DNA of 63,058 nt, counting the filler, from Pelomyxa schiedti (Eukaryota; Protista; Evosea), in NCBI GenBank assembly GCA_020536535.1. It is 17 parts of 17 records of this genome, joined end to end, with 100 filler letters (N's around TTAATTAATTAA, not from the genome) between each part and the next. Parts side by side here need not be neighbours in the genome. Positions count along the whole stretch, not along the records: positions 19,797 to 20,946 come from JAHLWZ010002765.1; 16 more parts are not named here. One strand, written 5' to 3'. The stretch's first letter is position 1; the number at the start of each line of letters is the position of its first letter. Below are positions 19,697-42,806 of the stretch, piece after piece. The notes below the pieces were generated by a model that had not been told where the DNA came from, ran no database searches, and was given only the letters and a program-made list of their open reading frames with translations. A program made the translations under genes and the position numbers.

Positions 19697-19976
19697 NNNN
19701 NNNNNNNNNNNNNNNNNNNNNNNNNNNNNNNNNNNNNNNNTTAATTAATTAANNNNNNNNNNNNNNNNNNNNNNNNNNNNNNNNNNNNNNNNNNNNTCGC
19801 ATATGGTGGTCTGACCAATAAACTGTTTGGAAGACCTATTCCACCAACACTGAAAACAATCATAGCCAACACACATAGACAAAGCACTTCTGTGACTGTT
19901 GCACAGAAGAGGTACAGGCACTCCTAAAAAGCACATTCGTTAATAAAATACCAGTACCACAACAAAAAAATAAAAA

Positions 19977-20058
19977 TGCAGGCAGTGGGGTTCGAACCCA
20001 CGCATCTCACGATAGCTGAGCTTAAATCAGCCGCCTTAGACCTCTCGGCCATACCTGC
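19977..20058 (-). tRNA. tRNA-Leu(TAA)
   Basis: GCAGGTA..TGCCTGC-A acceptor stem, anticodon arm GCTGA-TTTAAGC-TCAGC, long variable arm, GGTTCGAACCC T arm and downstream T-run. Confidence 0.95.
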
Positions 20059-20159
20059 TTCAGTAACACCAGAAGGAAGAACGTACAGTAGTAGGAAGCA
20101 ACAACCAAGGAAAACCAGGTCTATGAAAAGCCGGAACAGAAATCTTTTTGAATCTGAAA

Positions 20160-20241
20160 GCGTCGGTGGCGGAGTTGGTCTAACGCGGTGCACTCAAGAT
20201 GCATTTCCTTTGGAGCCTGGGTTCGAATCCCAGCCGGCGCA
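20160..20241 (+). tRNA. tRNA-Leu(CAA)
   Basis: GCGTCGG..CCGGCGC-A acceptor stem, anticodon arm GTGCA-CTCAAGA-TGCAT, GGTTCGAATCC T arm and T6 terminator. Confidence 0.95.
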
Positions 20242-20353
20242 GTCTTTTTTACAACCCCTACTCCGCCACCGAAGCTTTCCGATACTAGAGGAAGCTGTTG
20301 TTTGAAACATGTAAAAAGAGGTTGCGGAGAGTCACTGTTACTTGAAAGGCTCC

Positions 20354-20676
20354 CACCCAGGCCGTTATCCAAAAAGCAGCCATCGTCCACCCGAGATACC
20401 AGCAATATGACCCACCTTGAACAAAAGTATAACCGCAGACACACCTTCAATTAAACCAGTATAACCAGTAGCCGTCAAACCTCCGTCAAACCAAACACAA
20501 CAACAAAACAAACAAAGCATCTCGCAAACCAAAATAACCCAACGCAACACCGTAGCAGACACCAACACCACCAACACCACCAACACCACCAACACCACCA
20601 ACCCCCCTCAACCCCCTCTGTCGTTCCCAGTATAAAAAGTTCGTAATAAATGCCCCGACGTGTGGGCTTACCCCCC
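20354..20676 (+). mobile_element. 323-bp dispersed element (probable 5'-truncated non-LTR retroelement or SINE) inserted at the 5' end of tRNA-Gln
   Basis: Flanked by the direct repeat TACTTGAAAGGCTCC (20339-20353 and 20677-20691). A second copy lies reverse-complemented at 42552-42806. AATAAA near the right end and an internal (CCAACACCA)n STR. Confidence 0.8.
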
Positions 20677-20685
20677 TACTTGAAA

Positions 20686-20757
20686 GGCTCCGTAGTATAA
20701 TGGTTAGTATGGGAGATTTTGGCTCTCTTTATCTCAGTTCGATTCTGAGCGGGGCCA
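20686..20757 (+). tRNA. tRNA-Gln(TTG)
   Basis: GGCTCCG..CGGGGCC-A acceptor stem, anticodon arm GGAGA-TTTTGGC-TCTCT, T arm CTCAG-TTCGATT-CTGAG and T-run terminator. Confidence 0.93.
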
Positions 20758-20878
20758 CTAACCTTTTTTAACTCGTATTGCGGGCGAACTGCTATCACGA
20801 TCACTGGGTGATTGTACTGTTTGGCTACTGTTAACAGCCTTCTCTGGTTTTGTGTTGATCTCTTTCTGTAAAAAAGAC

Positions 20879-20946
20879 TGCGCCGGCTGGGATTCGAACC
20901 CAGGCTCCAAAGGAAATGCATCTTGAGTGCACCGCGTTAGACCAAC
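20879..20946 (-). tRNA. tRNA-Leu(CAA), second copy, 5' end cut by the contig edge
   Basis: Identical reverse complement of 20174-20241, also sharing the trailer GTCTTTTTTACA. Confidence 0.9.
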
Positions 20947-42551: not shown

Positions 42552-42806
42552 AGGGGTTAAGCCCACACGTCGGGGCATTTATTACGAACTTTTTATACTG
42601 GGAACGACAGAGGGGGTTGAGGGGGGTTGGTGGTGTTGGTGTCTGCTACGGTGTTGCGTTGGGTTATTTTTGGTTTGCGCGATGCTTTGTTTGTTTAGTT
42701 GTGTGTTTTGTTTGACGGAGGTTTGACGGCTACTGGTTATACTGGTTTAATTGAAGGTGGGTCTGCGGTTATACTTTTGTTCAAGGTGGGTCATATTGCT
42801 GGTATC
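42552..42806 (-). mobile_element. Second, shorter copy of the element at 20354-20676
   Basis: The reverse complement matches about 20395-20677, with fewer STR units and scattered SNPs. Confidence 0.88.

Follow-up and report, generated by a model that had tools for sequence, protein, structure and literature searches.

A retroposition-type insertion at the start of a tRNA-Gln gene in Pelomyxa schiedti

A tRNA cluster and the insertion within it

Within the window, that is, the whole 63,058-nucleotide stretch of Pelomyxa schiedti DNA that was analysed, positions 19797-20946 (from JAHLWZ010002765.1; hereafter the piece) form a eukaryote-style, dense tRNA cluster in which ARAGORN and Rfam place four tRNA genes in 1150 bp. 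A tRNA-Leu(TAA) gene on the minus strand (19977-20058) is followed by tRNA-Leu(CAA) on the plus strand (20160-20241), tRNA-Gln(TTG) on the plus strand (20686-20758) and a second tRNA-Leu(CAA) on the minus strand (20867-20946) that is cut by the edge of the piece. All three complete genes have a T-run on their 3' side, and that of tRNA-Gln(TTG) is a T6 terminator at 20764-20769. The tRNA-Gln gene itself is intact and scores 59.1 bits against the Rfam tRNA model over the full model length. Inside the cluster, between tRNA-Leu(CAA) at 20160-20241 and tRNA-Gln, sits an A/C-rich insert of 323 bp (20354-20676, +), recognised by its composition and from RNA contigs and lying in the same orientation as the tRNA. 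For the locus we drew on the Logan contigs of two small runs from the same organism that cover the piece (X1 and X2), and on contigs from two single-cell RNA-seq runs of the same study, labelled 'protist metagenome', that cover it in part (X3 and X4).

The insert is flanked by a 15-mer, TACTTGAAAGGCTCC, that a repeat search of the piece found exactly twice, at 20339-20353 and 20677-20691 (both +), as the earlier note on this DNA had claimed. The right copy is made of the 9-nt leader and nucleotides 1-6 of tRNA-Gln, so that it covers -9 to +6 of the annotated gene. The left copy joins the original flank (-9 to -1) to nucleotides 1-6 of tRNA-Gln and is preceded by the original upstream flank of that gene. 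Similarity around the pair extends by 0 bases on either side, and the 15-mer is the sole direct repeat of that length in the piece that is neither microsatellite nor tRNA. The number of exact 15-mer pairs expected in 1150 bp of uniform composition is 6e-4, and a direct repeat of at least 15 bp arose in 4 of 2000 dinucleotide shuffles (chance about 0.002). Because the duplication takes in the first six bases of the tRNA, the downstream tRNA-Gln is complete; what remains upstream of the insertion is an orphan stub of flank plus 6 nt. An insertion made by target-primed reverse transcription is expected to lie between direct duplications of about 7-20 bp, and those found here are exact over 15 bp. 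The locus thus carries a true insertion with a 15-bp target-site duplication and an intact tRNA-Gln.

The insert contains 121 A, 122 C, 37 G and 43 T (A+C = 243/323), and its GC skew falls to -0.75. At its 5' junction stands a single C (20354, +), where the RNA copy has A and the loose-end consensus before 20355 ends ...GTCA; this C is either an extra junction base or a variant. Reading of the frames reveals a short one, TQAVIQKAAIVHPRYQQYDPP followed by a stop (21 codons plus TGA; 20355-20420, +), which may be the C-terminal tail of a parent ORF. All three frames are open across the 30 bases known upstream of 20355 from an RNA contig, so that this frame assignment is unproven, and the frame quoted by the earlier note comprises only 24 codons within the window. 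The UTR-like part that follows includes a perfect 9-mer microsatellite, CACCAACAC, of 4.8 units (20560-20602, +) and, 20 nt before position 20670, an AATAAA of inferred function only (20645-20650, +). Position 20670 is the end of an apparently shared 3' terminal stretch (20613-20670, +) that a depth model puts at about two copies in run X1, and a run of six C (20671-20676, +) separates it from the duplication. The short frame, the A/C-rich UTR-like stretch, AATAAA and a C-run in the place of poly(A) had all been described in the earlier note and are present. It had also described a GCCC..GGGC hairpin near the 3' end; this exists, but it is only 4 bp long, and the 3' 77 nt of the insert fold no better than shuffles (z = 0.06).

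The six C are the only 3' tail of the insert; neither poly(A) nor a simple-repeat tail is present. Since tail-less non-LTR clades exist, this does not exclude a non-LTR origin. Together with the single C at 20354, the C6 run is best seen as junction filler or as a copy-specific tail. The repeat search of the piece found no terminal inverted repeats (TIRs) at the insert ends, and in place of the short, fixed-length duplication of a DNA transposon there is one of 15 bp. No Rfam family matched within 20354-20676 at E up to 1, and neither Rfam at that threshold nor ARAGORN found a tRNA-, 7SL- or 5S-like head. The insert therefore has no Pol III head of the SINE kind; such a head could have been lost by truncation.

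Several further features of the cluster were observed. The Leu(CAA) copies at 20174-20253 and 20867-20946 are inverted with respect to each other and share 100% identity over 80 nt, which takes in 12 nt of 3' trailer with its T-run; after subtraction of the 338 bp added by the insertion, the two copies are 275 bp apart with tRNA-Gln between them. Positions 20257-20292 (-) hold an inverted copy, 81% similar, of 20143-20178, that is, of the 5' flank and first 19 nt of Leu(CAA). This stub lies 15 nt behind the intact Leu(CAA) and makes 36-nt arms around the rest of the gene. No duplication partner for it was found in the piece, and a truncated tail-to-tail gene copy and fold-back repair are candidate origins. 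At the left edge, 19797-19941 is A/C-rich and lies under a 535-nt RNA contig (X3 rec17) that extends past the edge of the piece; an adjoining gene probably has its UTR here. The stretch contains TAAAAAG..TTCGT.AATAAA, which resembles TAAAAAGTTCGTAATAAA near the 3' end of the insert, and alignment of 19797-19976 with the insert gave no real homology.

All tRNA 5' flanks of the piece carry a purine-rich motif, ..(T/A)(T/A)(A/T)C(T/G)GAA(A), directly before +1. Flank comparison places it at 20059-20068 (-), 20150-20159, 20676-20685 and 20276-20285, and the flanks before the first G read TTACTGAA, AATCTGAAA, TTACTTGAAA and TATCGGAAA. In this organism the motif may serve Pol III genes as a start-site or upstream promoter element. 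Paralogue flanks, seen as loose ends of contigs, keep of it only ..AA before G. One X1 contig joins 20060 to 20153 with 29 letters on its shorter side, leaving out the 92-bp spacer between the divergent Leu genes; the join probably represents a paralogous tRNA pair and not an allele.

Junction contigs and relatives of the insert

Both junctions are bridged by contigs, in X1 by 20224-20553 and 20641-20729 and in X2 by 20224-20506 and 20633-20713. These two runs may be the source of the assembly itself, so that the bridging is not independent support. In X2, an A>C variant at 20441 lies on a contig that still spans the 5' junction, indicating that the insert is present in both variants. The empty-site alleles that the earlier note had proposed to look for did not appear: no contig of X1 or X2 skips 20354-20691, and a 27-mer of leader plus tRNA start, which detects a filled as well as an empty site, had 0 matches in metagenome contigs. 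Short-read contigs break in the microsatellite region, no contig spans 20554-20609, and the two halves of the insert are linked across it by the original assembly alone. X1 rec5 runs unbroken from the flank through 20553 with single-copy depth over 20354-20553, which argues that the 5' two thirds of the insert have no identical counterpart elsewhere in the DNA of X1.

The sequence of tRNA-Gln is very abundant in the RNA runs, where contigs begin exactly at 20686; since paralogues exist, these contigs are not assignable to the copy at 20686-20758. One paralogue, on a 1184-nt X2 contig, has 4 differences over 20684-20757, of which T>C at 20719 makes it Gln(CTG), and its 5' flank is unrelated. 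X1 contains a further Gln copy that agrees over 20700-20758 and differs in the 3' flank beyond. In the RNA contigs, template-switch-oligo remnants stand exactly at the mature 5' ends of Leu(TAA) (20058) and Leu(CAA) (20160), and CCA followed by A-runs comes after 20241, indicating that the single-cell libraries captured mature, A-tailed tRNAs.

A relative of the insert is transcribed. The 148-nt RNA contig X4 rec27 has 0 differences from 20355-20432 and carries 70 nt more on its 5' side that are unlike the window. As the match begins at 20355, the sequence shared with a further, transcribed copy sets in 1 bp beyond the duplication, which is what an insertion boundary would predict. The left 15-mer could otherwise be the stump of a mostly deleted tandem tRNA-Gln, or a chance repeat, with no insertion at all. 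The tRNA genes here do duplicate with short flanks, as in the two Leu(CAA) that share 12 nt of trailer, and there is another truncated tRNA 5' fragment at 20257-20292. Yet identity does not reach upstream of the 15-mer, the match to an independent transcribed copy sets in precisely one base beyond it, and the chance of a 15-bp repeat is low (about 0.002, as given above); we regard this alternative as barely credible.

The insertion is thus taken as real, and its 5' end allows more than one reading. The 30 known bases 5' of the rec27 match are G/T-rich and show no repeat periodicity, whereas the insert is A/C-rich, so that 20355 may be a true element end or another junction and not a point of truncation. 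The 70-nt 5' extension of rec27 could correspondingly represent a longer parent or the flank of another copy. A second RNA contig, X4 rec28, resembles 20389-20458 as a diverged relative (5 differences) and then runs into different but also A/C-rich sequence. Such a diverged copy argues that the source is a small family and not a single sequence; there are at least three sequence variants (the insert copy, the rec27 context and rec28), and rec27 and rec28 together indicate a transcribed family.

Contig depth points the same way for the 3' end. The X1 bin depths near the 3' junction fit, almost exactly, a unitig of about 88x over 20613-20670 together with the listed 47x contig at 20641-20729, where the unique flanks in X1 have 40-60x. 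The unitig comes from the depth model and is absent from the listed contigs. The doubled depth left of a graph break at 20670/20671 implies that the last ~58 nt are common to a further copy, which diverges at the start of the C-run. The model therefore suggests that the stretch ending at 20670 is present in about two copies that part at C6. Copies other than the one at tRNA-Gln are thus indicated by both the RNA contigs and the contig depth.

Searches beyond the organism gave little. A 22-mer from 20359-20380 had 0 matches in an exact scan of metagenome, prokaryote-genome and viral contigs. A minus-strand ORF within the insert produced no candidate in a word-indexed protein search, and at E up to 10 the third frame (20353-20451) had no Pfam match. 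With phmmer, the same frame had two matches among 1.84 billion representatives, both to bacterial DUF285 repeat proteins. These align at 40% identity with a single 25-residue repeat unit, and their scores add up over many such units; we reject kinship to DUF285 as repeat-inflated chance. Across the metagenome, prokaryote-genome and viral contigs and the protein searches, no relative coding for RT, APE, RLE or RNase H was recovered. The non-LTR origin proposed in the earlier note is accordingly upheld in part: the 15-bp duplication, the intact tRNA and the transcribed relative fit target-primed reverse transcription, but a relative with RT or endonuclease did not emerge.

Origin of the insert

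On balance, we take the insert to be a retroposed copy of a transcribed, multi-copy A/C-rich sequence, the parent being either a non-LTR element, represented by its 3' end, or a short non-autonomous partner of such an element. Target-primed reverse transcription is recognised by duplications of 7-20 bp together with variable 5' truncation. The insert has a 15-bp stagger, one orientation, a defined-looking 3' end and a truncated or fixed 5' end, which fits that anatomy, and on these grounds target-primed reverse transcription would be the somewhat probable route of insertion.

By this route, the bottom strand would first be nicked between -10 and -9 of tRNA-Gln, at about the expected Pol III start. 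The freed 3' OH would prime reverse transcription from the 3' end of the RNA, near 20670 with six extra C, and the top strand would be cut 15 bp further, between tRNA positions +6 and +7. The cDNA would then be joined at 20354/20355, either after a premature stop of the RT or at the element's own 5' end, and filling in of the 15-nt stagger would produce the duplication. The assignment of strands follows from the + orientation of the element, which puts the primer nick on the bottom strand at -10/-9 and the second nick on the top strand at +6/+7. Because tRNA transcription starts about 10 bp upstream of the mature 5' end (review, PMC5911963), the predicted first nick coincides with the expected Pol III start.

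The identity of the template bears on a first alternative, in which a LINE acted in trans on an ordinary cellular mRNA and the insert is a retrocopy (processed pseudogene fragment) of the 3' end of that mRNA. Its layout, an ORF tail followed by ~250 nt of A/C-rich UTR with AATAAA, would suit such an origin, as would the similarly A/C-rich transcribed stretch adjoining at 19797-19941 and the fact that the parent is transcribed. However, mRNAs mobilised in trans normally carry a poly(A) tail, and the insert has none; the variants, of which there are at least three (the insert, the rec27 context and rec28), resemble a repeat family; and neither a parent gene nor a protein family match in any frame was found. 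Where a retroelement has no poly(A), its RT usually recognises the element's own 3' UTR; the missing poly(A) thus speaks for an element, or for a non-autonomous partner of it, as the source in preference to a host mRNA. We therefore judge a retrocopy of a cellular mRNA to be unlikely.

The junctions bear on a second alternative, which dispenses with any retroelement endonuclease: a tRNA gene, being fragile and heavily transcribed, would have suffered a staggered double-strand break, and end joining would have sealed it with captured filler DNA or cDNA. Capture of this kind would account for the missing poly(A), the odd C6 and the extra junction C, and the second fragment of flank plus tRNA 5' end, at 20257-20292, is a hint of breakage and rearrangement at tRNA 5' ends in this cluster. 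Against it, break repair seldom leaves a clean 15-nt duplication free of deletions, and the 3' end at 20670 seems to match the end of the shared part, which argues for a defined RNA 3' end and not an arbitrary fragment. Both this origin and the idea that it proceeded with no retroelement endonuclease seem to us very unlikely.

The retroposed copy thus remains the preferred explanation. It draws on the exact repeat, the intact tRNA, the bridged junctions, the RNA contigs rec27 and rec28, the ~2x depth over 20613-20670 and the lack of TIRs. The points against it are that no RT or endonuclease relative was recovered, that the tail is only C6, that the bases upstream of the rec27 match are G/T-rich, that rec5 has single-copy depth and that the halves of the insert are joined across 20554-20609 by the original assembly alone.

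tRNA targeting and comparison with known elements

The earlier note had tentatively read the insert family as non-LTR elements that target the 5' boundary, or Pol III start, of tRNA genes. We find this reading doubtful, and equally doubtful its mechanistic form, in which targeting would proceed through a sequence-specific endonuclease or through contact with TFIIIB/Pol III while the duplication keeps the gene whole. In its favour, the predicted first nick at -10/-9 falls on the presumed Pol III start; the duplication covers the purine-rich motif ..CTGAA(A) then G that is common to all four tRNA 5' flanks; the element end lies 9 bp upstream of +1, a position like that of tRNA-targeting elements, in this one copy; and there are precedents in NLTR-A (PMC5006619) and in NeSL-1_TV, LIN15_SM and LIN25_SM, which insert inside tRNA genes (PMC4640811). 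These precedents also weaken any view that cutting at the tRNA start is unprecedented.

Against targeting, there is a single readable copy, in a cluster of four tRNA genes in 1150 bp, and one copy cannot show specificity for tRNA genes. Were 15-bp staggers placed at random in the piece, about 5% of them would span the 5' end of a tRNA. Selection also removes insertions by which a tRNA or coding gene is lost, and survivorship alone therefore enriches such sites. A second copy, at 42552-42806, is, according to the earlier note only, not beside a tRNA, and no RT or endonuclease is known for the insert family. We lean towards a site that was untargeted or only weakly preferred and in which the insertion survived as the gene was not destroyed. 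The suggestion of a restriction-like endonuclease stands lower still than targeting; no feature points to it in particular.

A more specific form of the targeting idea is that this understudied protist harbours a non-LTR family whose first nick falls on the Pol III start, ~10 bp before the tRNA genes, which we consider rather unlikely. We give as little credence to the accompanying traits of such a family, namely an orientation like that of the tRNA, a defined non-poly(A) 3' end and a second cut a few bases inside the tRNA. With the second cut inside the tRNA, the duplication would be what keeps the target gene alive, and the family would be a further independent invention of tRNA-start targeting. 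Were the family specific for tRNA starts, it would add a further lineage to the convergent targeting of tRNA genes by retroelements in compact genomes, and it would offer a natural case of a gene made whole by the target-site duplication itself. On present evidence this is one well-documented insertion, valuable mainly as a seed for annotating a repeat family in a protist genome. The neatly preserved retroposition-type insertion at the tRNA start is real, and its reading as an RLE element that cuts at the tRNA start is unproven.

Among known systems, the closest in position is NLTR-A of Dictyostelium purpureum, a non-LTR retrotransposon found 2-6 bp upstream of tRNA genes (PMC5006619, PMC5911963). 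Like NLTR-A, the insert lies immediately upstream of a mature tRNA, here at 9 bp, and leaves the gene intact. By contrast, NLTR-A is 7.4 kb long, encodes APE, RT and RNase H and is documented in 16 tRNA-associated copies, whereas the insert is one readable 323-bp copy with no known coding capacity and a duplication that reaches 6 nt into the tRNA. The likeness is one of position only, as the insert has no RT-like part to compare by sequence. The TRE5 elements of Dictyostelium discoideum, such as TRE5-A, are L1-like and carry an APE; they likewise insert by a target-primed mechanism upstream of tRNA genes with a duplication derived from the stagger, and are frequently 5' truncated. TRE5 elements lie ~44-54 bp upstream, in the opposite transcriptional orientation, and end in oligo(A) (PMC5911963), unlike the insert, which lies 9 bp upstream in the same orientation as the tRNA and ends in C6.

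Ty3 of S. cerevisiae and DGLT-A of Dictyostelium use the Pol III start region, where the predicted first nick at -10/-9 would also fall. Both are integrase-mediated LTR elements with short duplications, whereas the insert has no LTRs and its 15-bp duplication does not fit an integrase. Dada DNA transposons, which target tRNA and snRNA genes (PMC8869645), share with it the insertion into a multicopy small-RNA gene; unlike them, the insert has no TIRs, and a 15-bp duplication does not suggest a cut-and-paste transposase. In the RLE group of non-LTR elements, the families NeSL-1_TV (tRNA-Pro), LIN15_SM (tRNA-Arg) and LIN25_SM (tRNA-Glu) resemble it in that the insertion site involves tRNA gene sequence (PMC4640811). 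RLE elements are often without poly(A), and some, such as reptile Utopia, make ~20-bp duplications. What defines the NeSL and LIN families, however, is an RLE domain and the presence of many copies that share one fixed site, in contrast to the one readable copy described here. The insert thus resembles known tRNA-associated elements in position and, being known from one copy without coding domains, is assigned to none of them. Insertion by non-LTR elements just upstream of tRNA genes, or specifically into them, has already been described, and the insertion at tRNA-Gln is at most a further example of that kind.
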